From Thalia democratica (taxonomy: Eukaryota), in contig OZ241829.1 in NCBI GenBank assembly GCA_965202585.1, forward strand, positions 7,316,001 through 7,380,000: a DNA stretch of 64,000 nucleotides, read 5' to 3'. Made by a program: the position numbers and the translations under genes. A model generated the notes under the pieces. It ran no database searches and was not told the origin of the DNA. It worked only from the letters and a program-made list of their open reading frames with translations. Of this stretch, positions 1 to 56,712 are shown one piece after another; position 1 is the stretch's first letter; the number at the start of each line of letters is the position of its first letter.

Positions 1-100
1 CACAGAATCTGAAGTAATACGAGATTTTGTATTACTTCATTCAAATTATAAAACATTACTAAACTTAGTTCAAAATATTTATTATTATATGATAATATAA
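1..100 (+). pseudogene. SPT5: 3' end of SPT5-like KOW4 exon (copy entering from left of window)
   Basis: TESEVIRDFVLLHSNYKTLLNLV...*, same as 13995-14094. Confidence 0.6.
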
Positions 101-1106
101 CATAATAAACTTATTATTTATTTTTTAGTGAATAATAAAACATGTTAGCAAAAGGTGTTTTATAAACTGATAAGCTTTAAAAGCTATCAATACAATTAAC
201 CTTTTCATATTAAAAGCAAATGAAAAAATAAATGATAACTATTGAAAAGTATATTTTTTATCATGTTTCTGACTAATATGACATTATACTAATTCAATAA
301 TGCTGTGAATTCGGACTTATGATGACGTGTTTTGAACTAAACTCTTTTGAAAACCTTTATGTGAGTTGACGTTTGTTTATCAGGTTCACTAATAGTATGT
401 ATGGGGTATGATGATGCAATTTCTTATAACTTAAGTTTTGACATTTATTCTCGTAATATAAACAAACTACTGAGTTAATTTTTTTAGTTTGTTATAGAGT
501 TGTTTTTTATTAAAGATAGTTTATTGAGATAGATTAACAATATTATAATGCTATTAGCTGTTAAAAATTATTTATTTATAAAATAAGTTTAACTTTATTT
601 TTAACATTCTGTTAAGTTAACAATATTTTTATAAAAAGTTTTTTTTAAATAGACAATTTATGTTTCAATCCATTTTGACAAGTATCATAAAAAGGAAATA
701 ACTAGGATATTTTACTGTTTGTCAGTTCAGACCCTTCAATTAATTTTTGAATAACTTGAACTTTATTACAATATCAGCAAAAATTATGACATTTTCAAAA
801 GTCTTAATTAGTTACTACAAACCATCTGTTTTATTAGTTGAAAATTGAAATTTACCGTAAAATATTACAACTCACTTTATTGTTCTTATTATTATTATTA
901 TATCAAGGTTTTATATATAAGTAAATGATAAAAATTTTAGGAAGTCAAAGTGCAAAATAAATAGTAGTGTTAAGATATTGAAAAAAAAAAAAAGCAAATG
1001 AATTACTATTTTTATTGAGGTTATTTTTAAAGTAATTAAAAATCCAAACATTCTACTTTTTTAACAGCTTTAAAAATTTAGATCAGATAAAATAACTAAT
1101 AATTGT

Positions 1107-4436: not shown

Positions 4437-6740
4437 CTTGCTTGTTGACTTCAATGCTGGTATATAAAGTTTAAAAACTTTAGATTTAAATAAGTTCATT
4501 TAGTTCTTATTAGTTTACCTTTCTGTAAATTGCTATTATTTTTTTATTTGAAACATATTTACAAAGATAAGACTATTTTTTTTTACACATAACGTTTACG
4601 TGAATTTTAATACTTGAAAGTTTTCCATTCAAAAGCTGCATAAGCAGAGCAAGTGTACTTATTAAAGGCAGTTTTGATTTTTGTTGCTTAAATCTAATTT
4701 AAAAGAACAAAACTGATTAAATGCTTTGATAATAAGAAAAATTCAGCAAAACTTTTTTTTGTACATTTAAAGTATTAAAACTTTATAAATTAAACAAACT
4801 TATCCAGCTTTAATTAGCTATTATGGCAAAACAGATGCAAATATAACCTAACAGTTTATATATTATCGAAAATCAGAACTAAAGCAAAGGAGATATATTT
4901 CAAAATTAAAATCAACATTATAACAGTATTTATATCACAAAGCAAAGTTTTAAAAACATCACAAGCATTTACGTTGTCGTTTTGATATTTTGTTGAACCA
5001 GCCAGTAATGAAAATTATATGGGTATGAATAAAATGTGGTAGAATATCTAAATTTTTAAATCATCAATGCCAGGAATTCTAATTTACCTGCCTGGACTTT
5101 TATGTCAAATAAATTCACGTGGTTGCTTATAATAATGATAAATTTAAGATTATTGATTGTAATGTCTAATTAAGCAGAAGTATAATAAAGAATGTAAGTA
5201 ACTAATTAACTAATTAACTTTCAAACTAATTAACAGCAAATTTATGCTTAGATATAAGACATTAGAAAGCATTGTATATGATACACATAAAAAACCCTGT
5301 AGACCAAAACCTTGGCTTAGATGACACTAAATAATTGTTATTAAAATATAACTAAAAATAAAAACTTAAAATTATAATGGTACTTAGTCGGTGTAACGGT
5401 ATTTGATTTATTTTATCAAAAGTACAGAGCTGGTACCTACCATTGTTTATTTATTTTAACACATACGGTGGTAAATAAAGTTACATATAATGGTTAAATC
5501 TAATAGAGACCTTTAAACTCATAAAGGCTCTAAATGGAATTTTATTTGAACTGTAATTATTACTTAAAAGAAACAGTTTAATGTTTTAAATTTATAGCTA
5601 AATACATATGTTGTTTGTGATATAAAACTAGAAACGATCATGTAAATCATATAAAAATTAGATTCATTTATATACAGCAGTAAAATATTTAAGAGCTAAT
5701 TGCCATATATATTTGTATCTGTTAGTTTAATTAAGATGCACATTATCCAATACATGGACATATAGTTAGTGTTATTCATTACTATATAAGTTGCTTTATT
5801 CAACTTAAAAATATAGAGCAATTAAATAATTTATAAAACATACCATACACATACAACTAAAGTGTAAGTGAAATTTATGCTAAAATAAGTTTAAACTGTA
5901 TAAGACTACAAAGTGATGACGTAATAATAGTAAAAAGGTAAAAATGAAAAATACCACATAATTACTTGAAAAATCGTGGACAAAAACAGTCTGATTTATT
6001 AGAGTCTAATTTAAAAAATGCCTAAACTGTTTTATACAAGTTAAGACGTAAATACTTACTTGTGTAAATGGAAAACTTTAGCGTAGATTTTTCAAAATTT
6101 AAGTTGTTGTGGAGTGACAACGATACTAATTAAAACGAGAAGTTAATGTACTCACTTACTTTGTATAGTTTATCAAGTAACCAACAAAAGATGTTATCAG
6201 ACCTGCTGATCAACAAAGTAATAATAAATATAATGAAAACAGTGGTCCAACTTGAAATAGACATATACCAAATGTTAAATGTAATATAAATTAATTCAAT
6301 GTACCTACTACAGAATGTTACTTAACATATAAGTTTTAGTAGATAATTATAAATGCCATAACAACTAAACAAATGATTAGCTTTGATGTATTACAAACTT
6401 GCCATAACTAACTTTCAATTGACCTTTATACACAAACAAACTAAGATGTAATTTATTTACTAGACATACTAGGTATTTAATACTGTGTAACAATGTAATT
6501 AGTTAAATGACGACAATAAAATGATCCTGATAAATAAAATTACAAAGTAAGTTGAAGTGTTTATTATAGAATAATACCAGGCTGTCTACTACAAATCTGT
6601 AGCGTTTGTAGTACGACACCAAAGATACATACTATAAAACATAAAACTTTACTTGTAATTTATATGTGTTAATATTGAGTTTAAAAGAAAAATAACATAC
6701 CAAAAAATTGTGCGTAACTACTCGTACATCAAACAAAAAA

Positions 6741-7598: not shown

Positions 7599-7737
7599 AG
7601 ATAAGAGTCTGGCTTTTGTCAGCTAGTCACAGTTGCTTATAATAACTCTATAAAACATTAAATGGTTATCAAAGATTTGCTAGCTTTTAAATACACTTCA
7701 TAAACACTACAAGTAACAAACAACCAGACTCTTATCT
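7599..7737. mobile_element. MITE-like element, TIR AGATAAGAGTCTGG (copy a)
   Basis: agataagagtctgg ... ccagactcttatct, a perfect 14-bp inverted pair ~140 bp apart; recurs in every unit. Confidence 0.6.
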
Positions 7738-8180
7738 AATTTAGTTATATTAGCATTATCAATCATTACACTATGCTACATAATTCTAAAATATTTAACA
7801 GGAAAAACAGTGGTTAATCATTTCTTGTTATGTTTTGAACAGTTCAGAGACATAGACATGCTTGTATATTTTTTCAAAGACTAACTATTACTAAATGTTC
7901 AAATACTCTTTGATAAGAATTTCTATGGTGACACTGTCTAATAGTATACCATAAGTTTTTGTTCTACATCATCAAACAGCATTTGTATAATGAAACCAAC
8001 AAAATAATATTTGATTTAATGCTACACATAGTATCAAGCTGAAGATTAAACAAATACTTGTTTTATAATATCACTATTAAAATTCCAAACAAAGACTATT
8101 TTTGAGTACTATTAATACTCCAAAAATTAAGTTTAACACATCAGTACAACATAGCCTTTTTATAAAGATCATACATAGTC

Positions 8181-11165: not shown

Positions 11166-11998
11166 ATAAAAATATTTATAATAGTAAAACGGTTGACTTA
11201 CTTTTTACTGATCATAGACTTAAGATTTTCTAAATATATTTCCTATTGTTATAAGTATCTAAAATATACATATCTATAAATTATATTTGTTGTAAGCGAT
11301 TTTTTTGATTTATAACCTGTCTATTTTCAAAGCTACTTTATAAACTTCAATCAATAATAAATATTAAAACTTTTTTATACATATTTTGCGTCATTTTTAC
11401 AACTTAGCTTAAATTTTTATAAACTTCAAAATATATACTTAATAAACAGATTATTCTACCTTTAATTACGTATTAAAGTTGTATAAAGTATGTAAGAATA
11501 CCCTTTTGCTTTACAATTAAGAATAACTTTTTAATCTAATAGAGTTAATATTATTTCAATGATTTCTAGCTATATAAGAAGTTAGTTTTGATAGCTCTAT
11601 ATACATATATTGAATGATAATAAAGACTAACATTCTTTTGCTAATACATTTATTAATTTAACTGCTGATAACAGCAAACAGACCGAAAATCAGCTACTTC
11701 AACACCCGTACTTAACCCTAAATTATTAAATTAACTTTAATAAAAACATAAATTAATTGTGGTTTATAGTCTTAGAAGGATTTTAAACTTTTAAGTTTGA
11801 ATCAACTCAAAAACTAACGCTGTCGAATGCTATATAAATAAAGTTTTAATGCTAATCTATCAAAACCATCTTTAACTATCTGTTTGTTTTCCAATTATTT
11901 TTAAACTCTATAGTCTACACAATTTCGTTAAACAAAACTGTAAATAAAAAATGAAAACAAATTTTATTTTAAAAACCATTTATCCGTTTTAAATACAG

Positions 11999-14094
11999 TG
12001 TCACATCCAGTTGACGAAGTTGATCTACTTGCCCAGGAGACTTGGTGAGAGTTGGTAAAGGAGAATTGTCTTGTTTGACTTGAAAAAATCACTAAAATTG
12101 ACGTCACAATGCTGCCAAGTCACCTAGAGTTTAAGGTTAGCCAACATTAGCTTGTAAACTCAAAAAACTATTAAAATAAAGTATATTTCGTCAAACTTTC
12201 ATAAGTTAAGAGAAAATTATAAGTTTATTAACTTTATCAAAGAATAAGTTATATATATAGTAATTGTAAACTAAGCTAACTAGTTGAAAGCTGAAATAAG
12301 ATTTATTTTTGTCCGAGGAGTCCCTGGAATTTTAAGCGCAACGAGGTCAGGAAACAATTTAATGTTGGTAACCATGTTAAATTTATCAATGGAAAGCATA
12401 TGATTCATACAGGTAACAATAAACGCTAATGTAAACTTTCAGCGATTATTATTACTTGTTCAGCTAAAGTTTTAGATAATGTTCAAGCTAATATGGATTT
12501 TACCTCGTTATAGTTTTAAGTTAATAGTATAAGTAGCTTTAAAGTTATATTTTTATAAAATTATTTTGAACTTTTGTTATAGTTTTCTGTGTTTTAGAAT
12601 TAGTGAATGTTGTTATTATAATAACTTAAATTTTTTAATCAACTTTACGGTTACTGTGTATATAATAATAGTAGTAAAAAAGTACAATACGTTTTTTTCG
12701 TACTATGAATAATAAATACAAATATTTTTTTATTTTAAAGCTGAAACACATATACTTATTATATTTATTTAAACAGGTCTAGTATTGACAGTTAAACCGA
12801 ATAATGTTGTCATCATAGCAGACCTGACACTAGGAAAGCTGGAAGTTTTGCCTCGAGACCTGCACCTATTCGATAGGAGGTTTCAAATACAGCAACTGTT
12901 AAAATGTTGTCTAATACAATGTGATGCATGATTGAATAAAAAAAAATCAATTAGAAAAATATGTTGTAGTGCGAAGTACATATAAACAAGTCGAACGAAA
13001 ATTAAATATTATATTGATTGTTTGTATTGACAAACAGTTGTTAAAATTTTAATTTTATCATCAATTAATTTTCAATTTTAAAGTGACAAAATAAGTCTTT
13101 ACCACTTTGTCTACAAAATGTCTAGAAATCAGCCCTATCGACTTTAAATGATTAGGCCTTTCTTGAAATTAACATTGAGAAAAACTACAAAAAAATTGAA
13201 ATGAAATAACATTAAGTATATTTGTGAAGACTTTGAAGTATATTTGTGAAGACTTTAAACTTATTTATAAAGGGCTGCCAACCTCTACCTTAGATTTTTA
13301 AAAAACTTTTATGTAGCTATAAAATAATTTCAAGTATGAAACAATCGAAATTTACTTTATTAAATTTTATTTTTAAGTATTTTTAATAATTTAAGTAAAC
13401 TTAGTAGGATTATATTTTTTTGGGCAGTTATATTACCTCTATTGTGTACTGATTTTATTTTGACAGGTGCTAAAGCAGAATGTGTGTTTTAAATAGAAGT
13501 GCTTTTTATCTTACATGATTTACCGATTTGAGTAATTTGTACTCAAAGCAATTATATAAAACTTTTTTAAAAGTTAACCAAGTACAGTAGGTTTTCGCTT
13601 AAGTACGTATCTAGTACGTATCTAATTACAACTAATTTTGAACACTGACCTTAAAGTAAACTCTACCAATATGAAATTATAAATTTACAGCTTTTTAAGT
13701 TTGCTTTTTTTGAACTAGAATATCTTAAATAAGAATTCTTTAGAGCAAGTCTTCTACTTTATTGGGTGTTGTGAATATAAAACTAGTGCACTGCTAAGCT
13801 TTAAAACTTTTGTACGCTAGCTATTACATTATGCATATAATTCATATTTTTGTTGAACAGTATTAATAAATTGTCTAATATTGTTTCATTTCGTAAATTT
13901 AGAGAAAACATTTAAGAATTGATGTTAATGAAAAATACGCAAGAAATAAACAATTTAACAGCGGTCATAAAGTTTTCGGAAAAAAGTATTACGGCACAGA
14001 ATCTGAAGTAATACGAGATTTTGTATTACTTCATTCAAATTATAAAACATTACTAAACTTAGTTCAAAATATTTATTATTATATGATAATATAA
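11999..14094 (+). pseudogene. SPT5: SPT5 (SUPT5H)-like transcription elongation factor relic, KOW2-KOW4 exons
   Basis: Exon 11999-12135: PGDLVRVGKGELSCLT*K...VTMLPSHLEFK (human PGDNVEVCEGELINLQGK...ITIMPKHEDLK). Exon 12318-12412: ESLEF/KRNEVRKQFNVGNHVKFINGKHMIHTG ([25 protein letters not shown]...TG). Exon 12777-~12880: LVLTVKPNNVVIIADLTLGKLEVLPRDLHL ([30 protein letters not shown]). 13903-14094: GTESEVIRDFVLLHS (GREGEI..FRSFAFLHC). Correct domain order and GT/AG bounds on the first exons, but with stops and frameshifts. Confidence 0.8.
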
Positions 14095-15096
14095 CATAAA
14101 GAACTTATTATTTATTTTTGAGTGAATAATAAAACATGTTAGCAAAAGGTGTTTTATAAACTGATAAGCTTTAAAAGCTATCAATACAATGAACCTTTTC
14201 ATATTAAAAGCAAATGAAAAAATAAATGATAACTATTGAAAAGTATATTTTTTATCATGTTTCTGACTAATATGACATTATACTAATTCAATAATGCTGT
14301 GAATTCGGACTTATGTTGACGTGTTTTGAACTAAACTCTTTTGAAAACCTTTATGTGAGTTGACGTTTGTTTATCAGGTTCACTAATAGTATGTATTGGG
14401 TATGATGATGCAATTTCTTATAACTAAAGTTTTGACATTTTTTCTCGTAATATAAACAAACTACTGAGTTAATTTTTTTAGTTTGTTATAGAGTTGTTTT
14501 TTTATTAAAGATAGTTTATTGAGATAGATTAACAATATTATAATGCTATTAGCTGTTAAAAATTATTTATTTATAAAATAAGTTTAACTTTATTTTTAAC
14601 ATTCTGTTAAGTTAACAATATTTTTATAAAAAGATTTTTTTTATAGACAATTTATGTTTCAATCCTTTTTGACAAGTATCATAAAAAGGAAATAACTAGG
14701 ATATTTTACTGTTTGTCAGTTCAGACCCTTAAATTAATTTTTGAATAACTTGAACTTTATTACAATATCAGCAAAAATTATGACTTTTTCAAAAGTCTTA
14801 ATTAGTTACTACAAACCATCTGTTTTATTAGTTGAAAAATTTAAGTTTACCGTAAAATATTACAACTCACTTTATTGTTCTTATTATTATTGTATCAAGG
14901 TTTTATATATAAGTAAATGTTAAAAATTTTAGGAAGTAAAAGTGCAAAATAAATCGTAGTGTTAAGATATTGAAAAAAAATATACAAATAAAAAACTATT
15001 TTTATTAAGGTTATTTTTGAAGTAATTAAAAATCCAAACATTCTACTTTTTTAACAGCTTTAAAAATTTAGATCAGATAAAATAACTAATAATTAT

Positions 15097-15826
15097 TTAG
15101 ATAAGTTCTTCCAGTTTCACTCTTGTTACTGGATCCGGATTTAGCATGCGAACAATCAAATCAAACAAATCCTTTTCTCCAGCGTCGCTCTTATCAAAAT
15201 AAGACTCTATCTTCTTAACTTCGCCTTTTATGTATACAAACTCTGGCTCTTTCAAAAAATCTATTTCATTTTCATCTATTGACAACTTTTGACCAACCTT
15301 CTTCTTTTTATCATCTTCGGTCAATTTCAAGTTTATCCTCTTGATTTCATGTTGAGTAAATGGACCAATCATCAAGTGGATCATCCTGAAAAGTTCCTGA
15401 ACAGTATCCACCTTGAAAAGTAATTTTCCTGTGAAAAGTTCAAACAAAGTGCAGCCGATCGACCAAACGTCGCATGGATACCCGATCTGTTTAAATAAAA
15501 CTAATGTTAAATTTATAGATCCTAGTTTAATTACAAGGCAAAACATACAAGTACTTGGTTTATAAGAATATACTTCTTTTGAAGATAATGGCTTACTCTT
15601 TTAAAGATATTTATTTTTAATAAGTTGCTTGTTTAAGTAAAGTAGTTTACTTACTGAGTAATCTACTTAAACAACCTTGTGGCCCATTATGACGTCAGGA
15701 GCGCGGTACTGAAGTGTTGTTATGACGTCAAAGTTGAATTCTTCCTCCCAGTACACAGAGCCAAGGTCGCACAATTTGATGTCAGGCTTCATGTAAAAAT
15801 CATTTTTCCACTGGTGGTAGTAATAC
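15097..15826 (-). CDS. CMGC kinase C-lobe exons (15826-15676, 15486-15097), copy 2
   Basis: Same two exons and splice sites, both open; differs from copy 1 by a few synonymous and non-synonymous changes. Confidence 0.85.
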
Positions 15827-15949
15827 CTGTTTAACAAAAATGTAAATAAACTACATATTATTTAATCATTAACATTTGAATATTAATAAATATCTGTATA
15901 GTTTAAAATAGAATAACAAATATTTCTTTAGTGAGACGTATAATGGCAT

Positions 15950-18351
15950 TGAAATTTGAGTTAAATTACAAACGATATTAATTAAAACTGCTTAAAGCAC
16001 GTTTTTTAATAAAATTATACTGTTCATTTAGACCTCAAGTTAAACGAACTATGAGTTACCCCATAATCGAGTATCACAAAATATACTTGAAATTTAAGTT
16101 AAATTACAAACGATATTAATTAAAACTGCTTAAAGCACGTTTTTTAATAAAATTATACTGTTCATTATAAATATAAAGTTTAAATTAGACCTCAAATTAA
16201 ACGAACTATGAGTTACCCCATAATTGAGTATCACAAAATATACTTGAAATTTAAGTTAAATGACAAACGATATTAATTAAAACTGCTTAAAGCACGTTTT
16301 TTAATAAAAATATATTATTCATTAAAAATATAAAGTTTCATTTAGACCTCAAGTTAAACGAACTATGAGTTACCCCATAATTGAGTATCACAAAATATAC
16401 TTGAAATTTAAGTTAAATGACAAACGATATTAATTAAAACTGCTTAAAGCACGTTTTTTAATAAAAATATATTATTCATTAAAAATATAAAGTTTCATTT
16501 AGACCTCAAGTTAAACGAACTATGAGTTACCCCATAACCGAGTATCACAAAATATACTTGAAATTTAAATTAAATTACAAACGAGATTAAATCAAACTGC
16601 TTAAAGCACGTTTTTTAATAAAAATATACTATTCATTACAAATATAAAGTTTCATTTAGACCTCAAATTAAACGAACTATGAGTTACCCCATAATCGAGT
16701 ATCACAAAATATACTTGAAATTTAAGTTAAATTACAAACGATATTAATTAAAACTGCTTAAAGCACGTTTTTTAATAAAATTATACTGTTCATTATAAAT
16801 ATAAAGTTTCATTTAGACCTCAAGTTAAACGAACTATGAGTTACCCCATAATCGAGTATCACAAAATATACTTGAAATTTAAGTTAAATTACAGACGATA
16901 TTAATTAAAACTGCTTAAAGCACGTTTTTTAATAAAATTATACTGTTCATTATAAATATAAAGTTTTAATTAGACCTCAAATTAAACGAACTATGAGTTA
17001 CCCCATAATTGAGTTTCACAAAATATACTTGAAACTTAAGTTAAATGACAAACGATATTAATTAAAACTGCTTAAAGCACGTTTTTTAATAAAAATATAT
17101 TATTCATTAAAAATATAAAGTTTCATTTAGACCTCAAGTTAAACGAACTATGAGTTACCCCATAATTGAGTATCACAAAATATACTTGAAATTTAAGTTA
17201 AATGACAAACGATATTAATTAAAACTGCTTAAAGCACGTTTTTTAATAAAAATATATTATTCATTAAAAATATAAAGTTTCATTTAGACCTCAAATTAAA
17301 CGAACTATGAGTTACCCCATAACCGAGTATCACAAAATATACTTGAAATTTAAATAAAATTACAAATGAGATTAAATCAAACTGCTTAAAGCACGTTTTT
17401 TAATAAAAATATACTATTCATTACAAATATAAAGTTTCATTTAGACCTCAAATTAAACGAACTATGAGTTACCCCATAATCGAGTATCACAAAATATACT
17501 TAAAATTTAAGTTAAATTACAAACGATATTAATTAAAACTGCTTAAAGCACGTTTTTTAATAAAATTATACTGTTCATTATAAATATAAAGTTTCATTTA
17601 GACCTCAAGTTAAACGAACTATGAGTTACCCCATAATCGAGTATCACAAAATATACTTGAAATTTAAGTTAAATTACAAACGGTATTAATTAAAACTGCT
17701 TAAAGCACGATTTTTAATAAAATTATACTGTTCATTATAAATATAAAGTTTAAATTAGACCTCAAATTAAACGAACTATGAGTTACCCCATAATCGAGTA
17801 TCACAAAATATACTTGAAATTTAAGTTAAATTACAAACGATATTAATTAAAACTGCTTAAAGCACGTTTTTTAATAAAATTATACTGTTCATTATAAATA
17901 TAAAGTTTCATTTAGACCTCAAGTTAAACGAACTATGAGTTACCCCATAATCGAGTATCACAAAATATACTTGAAATTTAAGTTAAATTACAAACGATAT
18001 TAATTAAAACTGCTTAAAGCACGTTTTTTAATAAAATTATACTGTTCATTATAAATATAAAGTTTAAATTAGACCTCAAATTAAACGAACTATGAGTTAC
18101 CCCATAATCGAGTATCACAAAATATACTTGAAATTTAAGTTAAATTACAAACGATATTAATTAAAACTGCTTAAAGCACGTTTTTTAATAAAATTATACT
18201 GTTCATTATAAATATAAAGTTTAAATTAGACCTCAAATTAAACGAACTATGAGTTACCCCATAATCGAGTATCACAAAATATACTTGAAATTTAAGTTAA
18301 ATTACAAACGAGATTAATTAAAACTGCTTAAAGCACGTTTTTTAATAAAAT
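15950..18351. repeat. 157-bp tandem array, 15 monomers + partial, with a 5-monomer higher-order duplication
   Basis: 15 ttacccc cores; first monomer 138 bp (19-bp deletion), the rest 157 bp. Confidence 0.97.
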
Positions 18352-18553
18352 ACAAATAGAGACCTTATAAGACCAACCAAGCACCTTCTACGACAAATAT
18401 CGCTCCTACAAAGTACTTGGCTAGTACTGATTTAACTGCTTCTAGAAAAAATAGTACTTCCATCGTTTTTGGTCCTACACGTGGTTATGATCCACCTGGT
18501 TCGAGATTTCTCGGAAGTCACCTTCAAAAAGAACCCACACCAGTAATTACAAC

Positions 18554-27900: not shown

Positions 27901-28026
27901 TAACTATCTGTTTGTTTTCCAATTATTTTTAAACTCTATAGTGTACACAATTTCGTTAAACAAAACTGTAAATAAAAAATGAAAACAAATTTTATTTTAA
28001 AAACCATTTATCCGTTTTAAATAAAG

Positions 28027-30132
28027 TGTCACAGCCAGTTGACGAAGTTGATCTACTTGCCCAGGAGACTTGGTGAGAGTTGGTAAAGGAGAATTGTCTG
28101 GTTTGACTTGAAAAATAACTAAAATTGACGTCACAATGCTGCCAAGTCACCTAGAGTTTAAGGTTAGCCAACATTAGCTTGTAAACTCAATAAAATATTA
28201 AAATAAAGTATATTTCGTCAAACTTTCATAAGTTAAGAGAAAATTATAAGTTTATTAACTTTATCAAAAAATAAGTTTTATATATAGTAATTGTAAACTA
28301 AGCTAACTAGTTGAAAGCTGAAATAAGATTTATTTTTGTCCGAGGAGTCTCTGGAATTAAAAGCGCAACGAGGTCAGGAAACAATTTAATGTTGGTAACC
28401 ATGTTAAATTTATCAATGGAAAGCATATGGTTCATACAGGTAACAATAAACGCTAATGTAAACTTTCAGCGATTATTATTACTTGTTCAGCTAAAGTTTT
28501 AGATAATGTTCAAGCTAATATGGATTTTACCTCGTTATAGTTTTAAGTTAATAGTATAAGTAGCTTTAAAGTTATATTTTTATAAAATTATTTTGAACTT
28601 TTGTTATAGTTTTCTGTGTTTTAGAATTAGTGAATGTTGTTATTATAATAACTTAAATTTTTTAATCAACTTTACGGTTACTGTGTATATAATAATAGTA
28701 GTAAAAAAGTACAATACGTTTTTTTCGTACTATGAATAATAAATACAAATATTTTTTTTATTTTAAAGCTGAAACACATATACTTATTATATTTATTTAA
28801 ACAGGTCTAGTATTGACAGTTAAACCGAATAATGTTGTCATCATAGCAGACCTGACACTAGGAAAGCTGGAAGTTTTGCCTCGAGACCTGCACCTATTCG
28901 ATAGGAGGTTTCAAATACAGCAACTGTTAAAATGTTGTCTAATACAATGTGATGCATGATTGAATAAAAAAAAATCAATTAGAAAAATATGTTGTAGTGC
29001 GAAGTACATATAAACAAGTCGAACGAAAATTAAATATTATATTGATTGTTTGTATTGACAAACAGTTGTTAAAATTTTAATTTTATCATCAATTAATTTT
29101 CAGTTTTAAAGTGACAAAATAAGTCTTTACCACTTTGTCTACAAAATGTCTAGAAATCAGCCCTATCGACTTTAAATGATTAGGCCTTTCTTGAAATTAA
29201 CATTGAGAAAAACTACAAAAAAATTGAAATGAAATAACATTAAGTATATTTGTGAAGACTTTGAAGTATATTTGTGAAGACTTTAAACTTATTTATAAAG
29301 GGCTGCCAACCTCTACCTTAGATTTTTAAAAAACTTTTATGTAGCTATAAAATAATTTCAAGTATGAAACAATCGAAATTTACTTTATTTAATATAGCAA
29401 TAAATTTTATTTTTAAGTATTTTTAATAATTTAAGTAAACTTAGTAGGATTATATTTTTCTGGGCAGTTATATTACCTTTATTGTGTACAGTTTGGTTTG
29501 ACAGGTGCTACAGCAGAATGCGTGTTTTAAATACAAGTGTTTTGTATCTTACATGATTTACCGATTTGAGTAATTTGTACTCAAAGCAATAATATAAAAC
29601 TTTTTTAAAAGTTAAACAAGTACAGTAGGTTTTCGCTTAAGTACGTATCTAGTACGTATCTAATTACAACTAATTTTGAACACTGACCTTAAAGTAAACT
29701 CTACCAATATGAAATTATAAATCTACAGCTTTTTATGTTTGCTTTTTTTGAACTAGAATATCTTAAATAAAAATTCTTTAGAGCAAGTCTTCTACTTTAT
29801 TGGGTGTTGTGAATATAAAACTAGTGCACTGCTAAGCTTTAAAACTTTTGTACGCTAGCTATTACATTATACATATAATTCATATTTTTGTTGAACAGTA
29901 TTAATAAATTGTCTAATATTGTTTCATTTCGTAAATTTAGATAAAACATTTAAGAATTGATGTTAATGAAAAATACGCAAGAAATAAACAATTTAACAGC
30001 GGTCATAAAGTTTTCGGAAAAAATTATTACGGCACAGAATCTGAAGTAATACGAGATTTTGTATTACTTCATTCAAATTATAAAACATTACTAAACTTAG
30101 TTCAAAATATTTATTATTATATGATAATATAA
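28027..30132 (+). pseudogene. SPT5: SPT5-like KOW2-KOW4 relic, second copy
   Basis: Exons 28027-28162, 28345-28439, 28805-~28908 and 29941-30132. KOW2 keeps its frame through T*KITKIDVTMLPSHLEFK but has a TGA; the KOW3 exon is frameshifted. Confidence 0.8.
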
Positions 30133-31134
30133 CATAATAAACTTATTATTTATTTTTTAGTGAATAATAAAACATGTTAGCAAAAGGTGTTTTATAAACT
30201 GATAAGCTTTAAAAGCTATCAATACAATGAACCTTTTCATATTAAAAGCAAATGAAAAAATAAATGATAACTATTGAAAAGTATATTTTTTATCATGTTT
30301 CTGACTAATATGACATTATACTAATTCAATAATGCTGTGAATTCGGACTTATGATGACGTGTTTTGAACTAAACTCTTTTGAAAACCTTTATGTGAGTTG
30401 ACGTTTGTTTATCAGGTTCACTAATAGTATGTATGGGGTATGATGATGCAATTTCTTATAACTTAAGTTTTGACATTTATTCTCGTAATATAAACAAACT
30501 ACTGAGTTAATTTTTTTAGTTTGTTATAGAGTTGTTTTTTATTAAAGATAGTTTATTGAGATAGATTAACAATATTATAATGCTATTAGCTGTTAAAAAT
30601 TATTTATTTATAAAATAAGTTTAACTTTATTTTTAACATTCTGTTAAGTTAACAATATTTTTATAAAAAGTTTTTTTTAAATAGACAATTTATGTTTCAA
30701 TCCATTTTGACAAGTATCATAAAAAGGAAATAACTAGGATATTTTACTGTTTGTCAGTTCAGACCCTTCAATTAATTTTTGAATAACTTGAACTTTATTA
30801 CAATATCAGCAAAAATTATGACATTTTCAAAAGTCTTAATTAGTTACTACAAACCATCTGTTTTATTAGTTGAAAATTGAAATTTACCGTAAAATATTAC
30901 AACTCACTTTATTGTTCTTATTATTATTATATCAAGGTTTTATATATAAGTAAATGATAAAAATTTTAGGAAGTCAAAGTGCAAAATAAATAGTAGTGTT
31001 AAGATATTGAAAAAAAAAAAAGCAAATGAATTACTATTTTTATTGAGGTTATTTTTAAAGTAATTAAAAATCTAAACATTCTACTTTTTTAACAGCTTTA
31101 AAAATTTAGATCAGATAAAATAACTAATAATTGT

Positions 31135-31864: not shown

Positions 31865-31987
31865 CTGTTTAACAAAAATGTAAATAAACTACATATTATT
31901 TAATCATTAACATTTGAATATTAATAAATATCTGTATAGTTTAAAATAGAATAACAAATATTTCTTTAGTAAGACGTATAATGGCAT

Positions 31988-33133
31988 TGAAATTTGAGTT
32001 AAATTACAAACGATATTAATTAAAACTGCTTAAAGCACGTTTTTTAATAAAATTATACTGTTCATTTAGACCTCAAGTTAAACGAACTATGAGTTACCCC
32101 ATAATCGAGTATCACAAAATATACTTGAAATTTAAGTTAAATTACAAACGATATTAATTAAAACTGCTTAAAGCACGTTTTTTAATAAAATTATACTGTT
32201 CATTATAAATATAAAGTTTAAATTAGACCTTAAATTAAACGAACTATGAGTTACCCCATAATTGAGTATCACAAAATATACTTGAAATTTAAGTTAAATG
32301 ACAAACGATATTAATTAAAACTGCTTAAAGCACGTTTTTTAATAAAAATATATTATTCATTAAAAATATAAAGTTTCATTTAGACCTCAAGTTAAACGAA
32401 CTATGAGTTACCCCATAATTGAGTATCACAAAATATACTTGAAATTTAAGTTAAATGACAAACGATATTAATTAAAACTGCTTAAAGCACGTTTTTTAAT
32501 AAAAATATATTATTCATTAAAAATATAAAGTTTCATTTAGACCTCAAGTTAAACGAACTATGAGTTACCCCATAACCGAGTATCACAAAATATACTTGAA
32601 ATTTAAATTAAATTACAAACGAGATTAAATCAAACTGCTTAAAGCACGTTTTTTAATAAAAATATACTATTCATTACAAATATAAAGTTTCATTTAGACC
32701 TCAAATTAAACGAACTATGAGTTACCCCATAATCGAGTATCACAAAATATACTTAAAATTTAAGTTAAATTACAAACGATATTAATTAAAACTGCTTAAA
32801 GCACGTTTTTTAATAAAATTATACTGTTCATTATAAATATAAAGTTTCATTTAGACCTCAAGTTAAACGAACTATGAGTTACCCCATAATCGAGTATCAC
32901 AAAATATACTTGAAATTTAAGTTAAATTACAAACGATATTAATTAAAACTGCTTAAAGCACGTTTTTTAATAAAATTATACTGTTCATTATAAATATAAA
33001 GTTTCATTTAGACCTCAAGTTAAACGAACTATGAGTTACCCCATAATCGAGTATCACAAAATATACTTGAAATTTAAGTTAAATTACAAACGAGATTAAT
33101 TAAAACTGCTTAAAGCACGTTTTTTAATAAAAT
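31988..33133. repeat. 157-bp tandem array, 7 monomers + partial
   Basis: Length fits 138 + 6x157 + ~65 bp. Confidence 0.97.
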
Positions 33134-33335
33134 ACAAATAGAGACCTTATAAGACCAACCAAGCACCTTCTACGACAAATATCGCTCCTACAAAGTACTT
33201 GGCTAGTACTGATTTAACTGCTTCTAGAAAAAATAGTACTTCCATCGTTTTTGGTCCTACACGTGGTTATGATCCACCTGGTTCGAGATTTCTCGGAAGT
33301 CACCTTCAAAAAGAACCCACACCAGTAATTACAAC

Positions 33336-39548: not shown

Positions 39549-39648
39549 NNNNNNNNNNNNNNNNNNNNNNNNNNNNNNNNNNNNNNNNNNNNNNNNNNNN
39601 NNNNNNNNNNNNNNNNNNNNNNNNNNNNNNNNNNNNNNNNNNNNNNNN
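39549..39648. other. Assembly gap (100 N placeholder)
   Basis: Run of exactly 100 N. Confidence 0.99.
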
Positions 39649-40913
39649 TGGAAGTTTTGCCTCGAGACCTGCACCTATTCGATAGGAGGTTTCAAATACA
39701 GCAACTGTTAAAATGTTGTCTAATACAATGTGATGCATGATTGAATAAAAAAAAATCAATTAGAAAAATATGTTGTAGTGCGAAGTACATATAAACAAGT
39801 CGAACGAAAATTAAATATTATATTGATTGTTTGTATTGACAAACAGTTGTTAAAATTTTAATTTTATCATCAATTAATTTTCAGTTTTAAAGTGACAAAA
39901 TAAGTCTTTACCACTTTGTCTACAAAATGTCTAGAAATCAGCCCTATCGACTTTAAATGATTAGGCCTTTCTTGAAATTAACATTGAGAAAAACTACAAA
40001 AAAATTGAAATGAAATAACATTAAGTATATTTGTGAAGACTTTGAAGTATATTTGTGAAGACTTTAAACTTATTTATAAAGGGCTGCCAACCTCTACCTT
40101 AGATTTTTAAAAAACTTTTATGTAGCTATAAAATAATTTCAAGTATGAAACAATCGAAATTTACTTTATTTAATATAGCAATAAATTTTATTTTTAAGTA
40201 TTTTTAATAATTTAAGTAAACTTAGTAGGATTATATTTTTCTGGGCAGTTATATTACCTTTATTGTGTACAGTTTGGTTTGACAGGTGCTACAGCAGAAT
40301 GCGTGTTTTAAATACAAGTGTTTTGTATCTTACATGATTTACCGATTTGAGTAATTTGTACTCAAAGCAATAATATAAAACTTTTTTAAAAGTTAAACAA
40401 GTACAGTAGGTTTTCGCTTAAGTACGTATCTAGTACGTATCTAATTACAACTAATTTTGAACACTGACCTTAAAGTAAACTCTACCAATATGAAATTATA
40501 AATCTACAGCTTTTTATGTTTGCTTTTTTTGAACTAGAATATCTTAAATAAAAATTCTTTAGAGCAAGTCTTCTACTTTATTGGGTGTTGTGAATATAAA
40601 ACTAGTGCACTGCTAAGCTTTAAAACTTTTGTACGCTAGCTATTACATTATACATATAATTCATATTTTTGTTGAACAGTATTAATAAATTGTCTAATAT
40701 TGTTTCATTTCGTAAATTTAGATAAAACATTTAAGAATTGATGTTAATGAAAAATACGCAAGAAATAAACAATTTAACAGCGGTCATAAAGTTTTCGGAA
40801 AAAATTATTACGGCACAGAATCTGAAGTAATACGAGATTTTGTATTACTTCATTCAAATTATAAAACATTACTAAACTTAGTTCAAAATATTTATTATTA
40901 TATGATAATATAA
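39649..40913 (+). pseudogene. SPT5: SPT5-like relic, partial (5' part lost in gap)
   Basis: Begins inside the EVLPRDLHL exon; KOW4 frame at 40722-40913. Confidence 0.7.
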
Positions 40914-41915
40914 CATAATAAACTTATTATTTATTTTTTAGTGAATAATAAAACATGTTAGCAAAAGGTGTTTTATAAACTGATAAGCTTTAAAAGCTAT
41001 CAATACAATGAACCTTTTCATATTAAAAGCAAATGAAAAAATAAATGATAACTATTGAAAAGTATATTTTTTATCATGTTTCTGACTAATATGACATTAT
41101 ACTAATTCAATAATGCTGTGAATTCGGACTTATGATGACGTGTTTTGAACTAAACTCTTTTGAAAACCTTTATGTGAGTTGACGTTTGTTTATCAGGTTC
41201 ACTAATAGTATGTATGGGGTATGATGATGCAATTTCTTATAACTTAAGTTTTGACATTTATTCTCGTAATATAAACAAACTACTGAGTTAATTTTTTTAG
41301 TTTGTTATAGAGTTGTTTTTTATTAAAGATAGTTTATTGAGATAGATTAACAATATTATAATGCTATTAGCTGTTAAAAATTATTTATTTATAAAATAAG
41401 TTTAACTTTATTTTTAACATTCTGTTAAGTTAACAATATTTTTATAAAAAGTTTTTTTTAAATAGACAATTTATGTTTCAATCCATTTTGACAAGTATCA
41501 TAAAAAGGAAATAACTAGGATATTTTACTGTTTGTCAGTTCAGACCCTTCAATTAATTTTTGAATAACTTGAACTTTATTACAATATCAGCAAAAATTAT
41601 GACATTTTCAAAAGTCTTAATTAGTTACTACAAACCATCTGTTTTATTAGTTGAAAATTGAAATTTACCGTAAAATATTACAACTCACTTTATTGTTCTT
41701 ATTATTATTATATCAAGGTTTTATATATAAGTAAATGATAAAAATTTTAGGAAGTCAAAGTGCAAAATAAATAGTAGTGTTAAGATATTGAAAAAAAAAA
41801 AAGCAAATGAATTACTATTTTTATTGAGGTTATTTTTAAAGTAATTAAAAATCTAAACATTCTACTTTTTTAACAGCTTTAAAAATTTAGATCAGATAAA
41901 ATAACTAATAATTGT

Positions 41916-53400: not shown

Positions 53401-53601
53401 TGAATCAACTCAAAAACTAACGCTGTCGAATGCTATATAAATAAAGTTTTAATGCTAATTTATCAAAACCATCTTTAACTATCTGTTTGTTTTCCAATTA
53501 TTTTTAAACTCTATAGTGTACACAATTTCGTTAAACAAAACTGTAAATAAAAAATGAAAACAAATTTTATTTTAAAAACCATTTATCCGTTTTAAATAAA
53601 G

Positions 53602-55707
53602 TGTCACAGCCAGTTGACGAAGTTGATCTACTTGCCCAGGAGACTTGGTGAGAGTTGGTAAAGGAGAATTGTCTGGTTTGACTTGAAAAATAACTAAAAT
53701 TGACGTCACAATGCTGCCAAGTCACCTAGAGTTTAAGGTTAGCCAACATTAGCTTGTAAACTCAATAAAATATTAAAATAAAGTATATTTCGTCAAACTT
53801 TCATAAGTTAAGAGAAAATTATAAGTTTATTAACTTTATCAAAAAATAAGTTTTATATATAGTAATTGTAAACTAAGCTAACTAGTTGAAAGCTGAAATA
53901 AGATTTATTTTTGTCCGAGGAGTCTCTGGAATTAAAAGCGCAACGAGGTCAGGAAACAATTTAATGTTGGTAACCATGTTAAATTTATCAATGGAAAGCA
54001 TATGGTTCATACAGGTAACAATAAACGCTAATGTAAACTTTCAGCGATTATTATTACTTGTTCAGCTAAAGTTTTAGATAATGTTCAAGCTAATATGGAT
54101 TTTACCTCGTTATAGTTTTAAGTTAATAGTATAAGTAGCTTTAAAGTTATATTTTTATAAAATTATTTTGAACTTTTGTTATAGTTTTCTGTGTTTTAGA
54201 ATTAGTGAATGTTGTTATTATAATAACTTAAATTTTTTAATCAACTTTACGGTTACTGTGTATATAATAATAGTAGTAAAAAAGTACAATACGTTTTTTT
54301 CGTACTATGAATAATAAATACAAATATTTTTTTTATTTTAAAGCTGAAACACATATACTTATTATATTTATTTAAACAGGTCTAGTATTGACAGTTAAAC
54401 CGAATAATGTTGTCATCATAGCAGACCTGACACTAGGAAAGCTGGAAGTTTTGCCTCGAGACCTGCACCTATTCGATAGGAGGTTTCAAATACAGCAACT
54501 GTTAAAATGTTGTCTAATACAATGTGATGCATGATTGAATAAAAAAAAATCAATTAGAAAAATATGTTGTAGTGCGAAGTACATATAAACAAGTCGAACG
54601 AAAATTAAATATTATATTGATTGTTTGTATTGACAAACAGTTGTTAAAATTTTAATTTTATCATCAATTAATTTTCAGTTTTAAAGTGACAAAATAAGTC
54701 TTTACCACTTTGTCTACAAAATGTCTAGAAATCAGCCCTATCGACTTTAAATGATTAGGCCTTTCTTGAAATTAACATTGAGAAAAACTACAAAAAAATT
54801 GAAATGAAATAACATTAAGTATATTTGTGAAGACTTTGAAGTATATTTGTGAAGACTTTAAACTTATTTATAAAGGGCTGCCAACCTCTACCTTAGATTT
54901 TTAAAAAACTTTTATGTAGCTATAAAATAATTTCAAGTATGAAACAATCGAAATTTACTTTATTTAATATAGCAATAAATTTTATTTTTAAGTATTTTTA
55001 ATAATTTAAGTAAACTTAGTAGGATTATATTTTTCTGGGCAGTTATATTACCTTTATTGTGTACAGTTTGGTTTGACAGGTGCTACAGCAGAATGCGTGT
55101 TTTAAATACAAGTGTTTTGTATCTTACATGATTTACCGATTTGAGTAATTTGTACTCAAAGCAATAATATAAAACTTTTTTAAAAGTTAAACAAGTACAG
55201 TAGGTTTTCGCTTAAGTACGTATCTAGTACGTATCTAATTACAACTAATTTTGAACACTGACCTTAAAGTAAACTCTACCAATATGAAATTATAAATCTA
55301 CAGCTTTTTATGTTTGCTTTTTTTGAACTAGAATATCTTAAATAAAAATTCTTTAGAGCAAGTCTTCTACTTTATTGGGTGTTGTGAATATAAAACTAGT
55401 GCACTGCTAAGCTTTAAAACTTTTGTACGCTAGCTATTACATTATACATATAATTCATATTTTTGTTGAACAGTATTAATAAATTGTCTAATATTGTTTC
55501 ATTTCGTAAATTTAGATAAAACATTTAAGAATTGATGTTAATGAAAAATACGCAAGAAATAAACAATTTAACAGCGGTCATAAAGTTTTCGGAAAAAATT
55601 ATTACGGCACAGAATCTGAAGTAATACGAGATTTTGTATTACTTCATTCAAATTATAAAACATTACTAAACTTAGTTCAAAATATTTATTATTATATGAT
55701 AATATAA
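53602..55707 (+). pseudogene. SPT5: SPT5-like KOW2-KOW4 relic, further copy
   Basis: Same exons as 28027-30132. Confidence 0.8.
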
Positions 55708-56712
55708 CATAATAAACTTATTATTTATTTTTTAGTGAATAATAAAACATGTTAGCAAAAGGTGTTTTATAAACTGATAAGCTTTAAAAGCTATCAATAC
55801 AATGAACCTTTTCATATTAAAAGCAAATGAAAAAATAAATGATAACTATTGAAAAGTATATTTTTTATCATGTTTCTGACTAATATGACATTATACTAAT
55901 TCAATAATGCTGTGAATTCGGACTTATGATGACGTGTTTTGAACTAAACTCTTTTGAAAACCTTTATGTGAGTTGACGTTTGTTTATCAGGTTCACTAAT
56001 AGTATGTATGGGGTATGATGATGCAATTTCTTATAACTTAAGTTTTGACATTTATTCTCGTAATATAAACAAACTACTGAGTTAATTTTTTTAGTTTGTT
56101 ATAGAGTTGTTTTTTATTAAAGATAGTTTATTGAGATAGATTAACAATATTATAATGCTATTAGCTGTTAAAAATTATTTATTTATAAAATAAGTTTAAC
56201 TTTATTTTTAACATTCTGTTAAGTTAACAATATTTTTATAAAAAGTTTTTTTTAAATAGACAATTTATGTTTCAATCCATTTTGACAAGTATCATAAAAA
56301 GGAAATAACTAGGATATTTTACTGTTTGTCAGTTCAGACCCTTCAATTAATTTTTGAATAACTTGAACTTTATTACAATATCAGCAAAAATTATGACATT
56401 TTCAAAAGTCTTAATTAGTTACTACAAACCATCTGTTTTATTAGTTGAAAATTGAAATTTACCGTAAAATATTACAACTCACTTTATTGTTCTTATTATT
56501 ATTATTATATCAAGGTTTTATATATAAGTAAATGATAAAAATTTTAGGAAGTCAAAGTGCAAAATAAATAGTAGTGTTAAGATATTGAAAAAAAAAAAAG
56601 CAAATGAATTACTATTTTTATTGAGGTTATTTTTAATGTAATTAAAAATCTAAACATTCTACTTTTTTAACAGCTTTAAAAATTTAGATCAGATAAAATA
56701 ACTAATAATTGT

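Follow-up and report, generated by a model that had tools for sequence, protein, structure and literature searches.

The window is the whole stretch of DNA that was analysed, 64,000 nucleotides long (contig C5, 7,316,001-7,380,000). Within the feature under study (window 11999-14094), relics of three exons of the gene SPT5 and the two introns between them lie on the plus strand at 11999-12931, in the exon order of the canonical gene. The first is a relic of the KOW2 exon (11999-12135), placed by tblastn, by a three-way alignment and by a table of 21 copies. It is followed by a retained intron of 183 nt (12136-12317; 185 nt in the canonical gene) and by the relic of the first KOW3 exon (12318-12412), placed by tblastn, alignment and the copy table. 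A second retained intron of ~365 nt (12413-12776; 368 nt in the canonical gene) leads to the relic of the second KOW3 exon (12777-12931), which is placed by tblastn and by its match to PDB entry 2DO3 and ends at a TGA codon (12929-12931). The stretch beyond it on the same strand, 12932-13397, is non-coding and homologous to a solitary sister copy on the same contig; KOWx is undetectable within it.

The relic and canonical introns are nearly equal in length even though their sequences are randomised. This agreement may be a coincidence, and the introns of the sister copy differ by 22-24 nt. At window 13286-13439 the summed contig depth rises to 2-3 times the level elsewhere in the unit, and numerous contigs break off there with unlike sequence. 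A short dispersed repeat with further occurrences in the genome is probably located at about this place (window ~13286-13439).

The window is very AT-rich (23-31% G+C in 2-kb bins) and is built of large repeated units, each carrying blocks of a 157-bp satellite and a kinase relic. The kinase relic retains an open frame of 149 amino acids from the C-lobe, at window 15097-15546 on the minus strand and again in each unit (Pkinase, E 2.3e-9). Satellite blocks of ~4 to 16 repeats each lie at 1796-2566, 15866-18427, 31904-33209 and from 42685 onward. Because these blocks vary in length between units, the units themselves range from 14 to 16 kb.

Three full copies of the SPT5 relic and one cut copy are found in the window, all on the plus strand. 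Window 11900-14200, which contains copy 1, recurs at 27928-30238 and 53503-55813 with 97.8% identity. Copy 2 (28027-28959; exons 28027-28162, 28345-28439 and 28805-28959) represents the majority form, in which the additional base of copy 1 is missing. Copy 3 consists of the tail of the second KOW3 exon only (39649-39740), the remainder lying behind an N gap (39549-39648). Copy 4 occupies 53602-54534 (exons 53602-53737, 53920-54014 and 54380-54534). A partial copy of the stretch 11900-14200 (39649-41019) directly follows the N gap, and the tail of a further unit is found at window 1-206.

Copies 2 and 4 are 25.6 kb distant from each other and agree at every position (100% identity) over 1448 nt (27993-29440 and 53568-55015). 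Their exon relics are also identical to those of three copies on contig C600. The identity of copies 2 and 4 is due either to the assembly or to a block of two units that was duplicated very recently.

Identity and extent of the SPT5 relics

SPT5 is essential and is normally present as a single copy in animals. The canonical SPT5 of the host was located by a genome-wide search for the NGN domain, on the minus strand of contig C7 at ~28,416,400-28,424,850. All expected exons are present there: the acidic N-terminus, NGN, KOW1, KOW2, KOW3, KOWx, KOW4, KOW5 and the repeats of the C-terminal repeat region (CTR). The best named full-length match is a coral SPT5, with 54% identity. In the canonical gene (L006, ~5008-5250) the end of the KOW2 exon and its donor region (...EELRVCT) are repeated inside the following intron; this repeat is a small internal duplication in the working SPT5 gene.

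When the canonical KOW2 exon and both KOW3 exons are used as tblastn queries, they find colinear matches at 11983-12138, 12316-12414 and 12773-12868, and the matches recur in copies 2 and 4. The E values are 3e-8 for the KOW2 exon (in copy 2) and 1e-7 and 9e-10 for the KOW3 exons. The KOW2 match in copy 1 reaches only E 0.009, because that copy carries an extra frameshift. In Smith-Waterman comparisons, the relics score 83 and 102, whereas the null scores average ~24 and reach at most 34-37. Used as the only query, the KOW3 piece matches the KOW3 domain of human SPT5 (PDB 2DO3) with a phmmer E value of 1.6e-5. With the Pfam profile KOW2_Spt5 (PF23284), the array copies score ~25 bits when read across a TGA, below the cut-off of 28.9; the sister copy scores 34 bits and the canonical gene 51.7 bits. 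Pfam scans of single exons of the relic return nothing relevant because the pieces are too short. As a relic of an SPT5 gene (Spt5/NusG family), the stretch has the KOW2 and KOW3 domains.

Identity to the host canonical gene is low, at 50-62% for amino acids (48-62% in the tblastn matches) and ~56% for nucleotides (0.56). Like all other comparisons, these were made one exon at a time, with summed counts. Base composition differs as well: the G+C content of the exons is 0.52 for the canonical gene but 0.37 for the relics. Since both introns are kept at canonical positions, the relic is not a retrocopy (processed pseudogene).

The original prediction had placed four to five exons here, including KOW4 and possibly KOWx, and only the three exons of KOW2 and KOW3 survive scrutiny. 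The proposed KOWx (13467-13580, plus strand) and KOW4 (13930-14061, plus strand) have Smith-Waterman scores within the null distribution, indistinguishable from chance. Measured against natural and Markov nulls, the fractions of null scores at or above those observed for the candidates are 0.98, 0.87 and 0.18. A match noticed by eye at 13993-14037 scores 27, and 18-21% of null scores are as high. The candidate regions show no PDB match at E<=10 and no relevant Pfam match, nor is KOWx detectable at the place that the length of the canonical intron would predict for its exon. Genome-wide searches with the profiles KOWx_SPT5 (PF23037) and KOW4_SPT5 (PF23291) find only the canonical gene on C7. 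Because KOWx and KOW4 fail these tests, the feature consists of three exons and ends near 12931.

The remainder of the prediction for the window agrees with the searches. The KOW2 and KOW3 relics stand in the correct exon order, the host's own SPT5 is far from identical to them, and tblastn with canonical exons shows no NGN, KOW1, KOW5 or CTR in the window. For KOW5 and the CTR, nothing above noise is found at the sister locus either. When the sister copy is used as the query for remains of NGN and KOW1 in the array unit, one weak DNA similarity of 119 nt is found (7656-7772), which is not trusted.

The tandem array and its sister copy

A DNA search finds at least 23 copies of the relic in the genome, with 94-100% identity to the query. 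Of these, 17 lie on C5 between 7.014 and 7.716 Mb, three on C600, two on C787 and one on C281. All copies on C5 have the same orientation and are arranged head-to-tail at a spacing of 14-29 kb (14.0-17.8 kb where adjacent). Units of similar length and high identity, head-to-tail at one locus, are what defines a tandem segmental duplication or macrosatellite, and the 700-kb region of C5 is a gene-relic macrosatellite.

For 21 copies, 18 of them fetched from beyond the window, the sequences were aligned; pairwise identity is 95.9-100%, with a median of 98.2%. The exons have equal lengths in all of these copies, so that three lesions are common to every one: a -1 frameshift before the PGD motif in the KOW2 exon, a 9-nt in-frame deletion in the same exon and a +1 frameshift near 12335 in the first KOW3 exon. 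Of the 21 copies, 20 have a TGA nonsense codon in KOW2 and 16 have a TAA in the first KOW3 exon. Other lesions are private, including two extra stops and the extra base at 12083, which occurs in copy 1 of the window only and is missing from all four public runs compared.

The single copy without the KOW2 TGA is that on C281 (C281:6648-6749, minus strand). It has TTA at this place and keeps both frameshifts.

No open reading frame of the kind expected of a working SPT5 gene runs across the relic exons. Among the array copies, exons are 0.981 and introns 0.993 identical, so the exons are no better conserved. The array relic has no present-day constraint or coding function. Because two frameshifts are present in all 21 copies and the TGA in 20, the fragment was already dead when it was amplified. 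The prediction that the fragment had been amplified, had died beforehand and carried partly shared and partly copy-specific stops and frameshifts is borne out by the copy number and by the 21-copy table.

The sister copy lies at C5:6,895,379-6,898,040, 420 kb upstream of the window, where the NGN search matches at 6,895,803. Its relics are colinear with SPT5 and comprise two NGN exons, KOW1 (in three exon pieces), KOW2 and both KOW3 exons. NGN and KOW1 occupy C5:6,895,379-6,896,494. The NGN domain scores 29.8 bits against a cut-off of 22.4, and genome-wide the domain (PF03439) is found only here and in the canonical gene. This copy is also dead: it has stops of its own, deletions of 26 nt and 7 nt, and a splice donor that has been lost. 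No acidic N-terminal exons, KOWx, KOW4, KOW5 or CTR are detectable in it. The sister copy shows that the paralog lineage had NGN and KOW1; apparently, this lineage never had, or lost early, everything after KOW3.

The array relic can be aligned with the sister copy throughout, with an identity of 0.77 in exons and 0.71 in introns. For intron 1, the z score is 4.1 against the sister copy and -0.9 against the canonical gene; for intron 2, it is 26-32 above shuffles against the sister copy and 0.4-0.6 against the canonical gene. At 7-9 of ~39-54 sites where the canonical gene agrees with an outgroup, the array and the sister copy share derived residues. They also have in common two in-frame deletions, of 12 nt and 27 nt, the latter in the second KOW3 exon. 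The SPT5 gene of a related species (L011) has the canonical length at both sites, so the deletions arose on the stem of the paralog. The array and the sister copy have no disabling lesion in common, and each lineage carries about four of its own. A few codons past the last conserved residues, a TGA stands at the homologous place in both (12929-12931 in the array), and an ATG is found just before the NGN domain of the sister copy (C5:6,895,388).

The neighbouring kinase extends this relationship beyond SPT5. A kinase homolog on the minus strand at the sister locus (6,888,859-6,889,907) is colinear with the kinase relic of the array and 50-76% identical to it in amino acids. No kinase homology is found within 50 kb around the canonical SPT5. 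Since the kinase is colinear at the array and sister loci and is not found near the canonical gene, the two loci go back to one segmental duplication of a kinase-plus-paralog segment.

Origin, probable past selection and decay of the paralog

The three exons are best explained as a fragment of a non-processed, intron-retaining pseudogene, truncated at both its 5' and 3' ends and derived from a lineage-specific SPT5 paralog. A probability of about 0.68 is given to this explanation as a whole, including the history proposed for it below.

The placement of the duplication comes from quartets of the host canonical gene, the paralog, the SPT5 of the related species (L011, ENA ERZ22157276) and distant outgroups. 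In these quartets, 10-16 sites group the host canonical gene with the sister copy, compared with 0-2 and 2-4 for the alternatives. Thus, the duplication is specific to the host's own lineage and took place after this lineage and the relative represented by L011 had separated. From that point on, the paralog has evolved 4-8 times faster than the canonical gene, with 41-49 private amino-acid changes compared with 5-11 (Tajima chi-square 20-26). Both a lineage-specific origin and fast evolution had been proposed in the original prediction, and both are upheld by these counts.

The length of the paralog stem can be given only as a minimum, because synonymous and intron divergence from the canonical gene are saturated. 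For none of the five relic introns that were compared can homology to the canonical gene be detected (z below 1). According to simulations whose calibration used the indel load between the array and the sister copy, homology becomes undetectable only at a divergence of at least ~0.75 substitutions per site.

An alternative to a once-functional paralog is that only the segment from NGN to KOW3 was duplicated, that it was never useful and drifted neutrally from the start, and that it was amplified later. Both lineages do look like a partial duplicate that never functioned, since neither has the acidic N-terminal exons, KOWx, KOW4, KOW5 or the CTR, and no intact copy is present in the genome. In KOW2-KOW3, synonymous differences are saturated (pS 0.77) and pN is 0.34; the dN to the canonical gene, 0.45, is about the neutral prediction at the minimum intron divergence. 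However, the sister copy differs from the canonical gene by a dN of 0.26-0.27 and a dS of 1.1-1.4 (Nei-Gojobori method, NG86). The resulting dN/dS is 0.19-0.24, where ~0.5 would be expected of a copy dead from birth.

Because the neutral markers are saturated in comparisons with the canonical gene, selection was tested on the pair formed by the array and the sister copy, whose introns can still be aligned. A base-specific substitution matrix was obtained from the introns of this pair and applied to their exons as a neutral model. The model predicts the synonymous difference well (pS observed 0.348, predicted 0.355). The nonsynonymous difference, in contrast, is 0.181, against a neutral expectation of 0.31 +/- 0.03, and none of 1000 simulations is as low (P < 0.001). 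Nonsynonymous divergence between the two thus stands at ~58% of the neutral rate calibrated on introns. For the pair, omega is 0.44, whereas the null median is 0.84 (P 0.006-0.008). These values are drawn from only 103 codons and from a neutral model based on AT-rich, imperfectly aligned introns.

The deficit of nonsynonymous differences suggests that constraint at the level of the protein persisted after the two lineages had separated. A copy that was never useful should not show such a deficit relative to its own introns and synonymous sites. It also fits poorly with the fact that both stem deletions are in frame and that no disabling lesion is common to the two lineages, despite about four private ones in each. 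For these reasons, neutral drift from birth is considered unlikely, but not negligible. The deficit, the in-frame deletions and the lack of a shared disabling lesion together favour the reading in which the paralog was probably once functional. This reading, proposed originally as a paralog that had worked, then died and was then amplified, is retained with moderate confidence.

A probable course of events for the once-functional paralog is as follows. Once the host lineage and the relative represented by L011 had separated, a segment of SPT5 reaching from the NGN exons through the second KOW3 exon would have been duplicated onto C5, beside a kinase gene. Purifying selection, relaxed but real, would have maintained the open frame of this copy, which would also have gained the two in-frame deletions. 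The segment of kinase plus paralog would then have been duplicated again, giving the solitary sister copy and the progenitor of the array, and both products would have decayed independently. Finally, the progenitor, of which only KOW2-KOW3 was left and in which two frameshifts and a stop had arisen, would have been multiplied to at least 23 copies within ~700 kb. In this last step the SPT5 relic would have been carried passively, in a tandem unit of 14-16 kb together with the kinase relic and the 157-bp satellite. We infer the order of these events and the past function; homology, copy number, lesions, the placement of the duplication, the asymmetry of rates and the nonsynonymous deficit are results of the tools.

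Amplification could instead have come about by transposition, if a transposon of the Helitron or Pack-MULE type had captured a fragment of SPT5 with its exons and introns. The fragment does keep exons and introns, and its repeated unit brings together pieces of unrelated genes. However, the copies are not dispersed but follow one another head-to-tail on one strand, in 700 kb of C5 or on small unplaced contigs (C600, C787 and C281), and the kinase-SPT5 neighbourhood is conserved at the solitary sister locus, so that capture by a transposon is very improbable. A present-day non-coding role, for example as a cluster of repeats that is heterochromatic or produces small RNAs, has nothing more in its support than the large, homogeneous, one-strand array and is highly unlikely, since with 56% nucleotide identity the relic is too unlike the canonical SPT5 to pair with and target it, divergence among the copies is similar in exons and introns, and the fragment is found in no public run recorded as RNA (a search of contigs only, which is uninformative on transcription).

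If the paralog worked, its form is a separate question. The shared TGA after KOW3 and the ATG before NGN in the sister copy are compatible with a shortened protein from NGN to KOW3, and prove nothing. It is a tentative and rather doubtful idea that the ancestor was a working "mini-SPT5" of NGN and KOW1-3, running from this ATG to this stop. Such a protein would have been without the acidic N-terminus, KOWx-KOW5 and the CTR, the region of SPT5 that is phosphorylated by P-TEFb. If it existed, it could have bound SPT4 and the polymerase clamp and acted as a specialised or competing elongation factor in this lineage of marine animals. Intact orthologues might then survive in sister species. A link to germline or small-RNA biology, as drawn in the original prediction, is speculation.

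Genome-wide searches with NGN and with DNA find no intact member of the paralog family in the host. When the NGN/KOW1 exon of the sister copy was compared exhaustively, and without a profile, with 1.84 billion representative sequences, 433 SPT5-like matches were returned, none closer than the host canonical gene; the best has an identity of at most 59%, compared with 62% for the host's own gene. This library is clustered at 50% identity, and a close orthologue could be hidden within a cluster. A word-indexed search gave no candidate within its length range of 40-126 amino acids. Given the clustering and the limits on length, the absence of an intact relative is not proven. DNA of the fragment is present in two samples labelled with the organism (A and B), at a weaker level in a third (C), and in metagenomes of marine origin from four studies. 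The host is therefore an animal that is common in the sea and probably planktonic.

Comparison with known systems

The array resembles duplicated pseudogene fragments found in tandem segmental duplications or macrosatellites. As in these, introns and exon order are kept, the lesions predate the amplification, and the near-identical copies lie in a tandem unit (here of 14-16 kb) with relics of other genes and a satellite. Unlike typical duplicated pseudogenes, the parent here is an elongation factor that is normally single-copy and essential, and the amplified piece comes from a diverged paralog rather than directly from the working gene. Because every member in this genome is dead, the practical value of the finding lies mostly in annotation: the fragments, at least 23 in number, and the sister copy should be annotated as pseudogenes and not as SPT5 exons.

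Specialised paralogs of SPT5 or NusG are known, to our knowledge, from plants, ciliates and bacteria, and a search of papers for such paralogs returned these three groups and no animal case. Those of plants and ciliates, SPT5L/KTF1 and Spt5m, are intact and expressed and have a dedicated role, none of which is found for the relic.

An example from plants is SPT5L/KTF1, a paralog of SPT5 in RNA-directed DNA methylation (PMC2910046; PMC3382729). Like the paralog described here, it arose by a duplication of SPT5 within one lineage, has NGN and KOW domains and diverges from the canonical gene. SPT5L, however, is intact and functional and has a WG/GW tail that binds Argonaute, whereas the relic is dead, stops after KOW3 without such a tail and belongs to an animal.

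In the ciliate Paramecium, Spt5m is a meiosis-specific homolog of SPT5 for non-coding transcription (PMC5416832, PMC8934623). Here too, one genome carries a further SPT5 gene beside the housekeeping copy, from which it has diverged. Unlike the present paralog, which is known only from dead copies, Spt5m is an intact, expressed gene that has been examined by knock-down.

The only precedent known to us for a minimal specialised version of NusG/Spt5 is RfaH. This bacterial protein is a specialised paralog of NusG (bioRxiv 10.1101/324400). RfaH is a shortened member of the NusG/Spt5 family made of NGN plus KOW, and its likeness to a protein of NGN and KOW1-3 is conceptual only: it comes from another domain of life, has one KOW domain and has a proven function. 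If an animal lineage did once keep a second, shortened SPT5 under selection, this would extend the pattern of specialised paralogs, and such past selection would direct the search for a living member to sister species.
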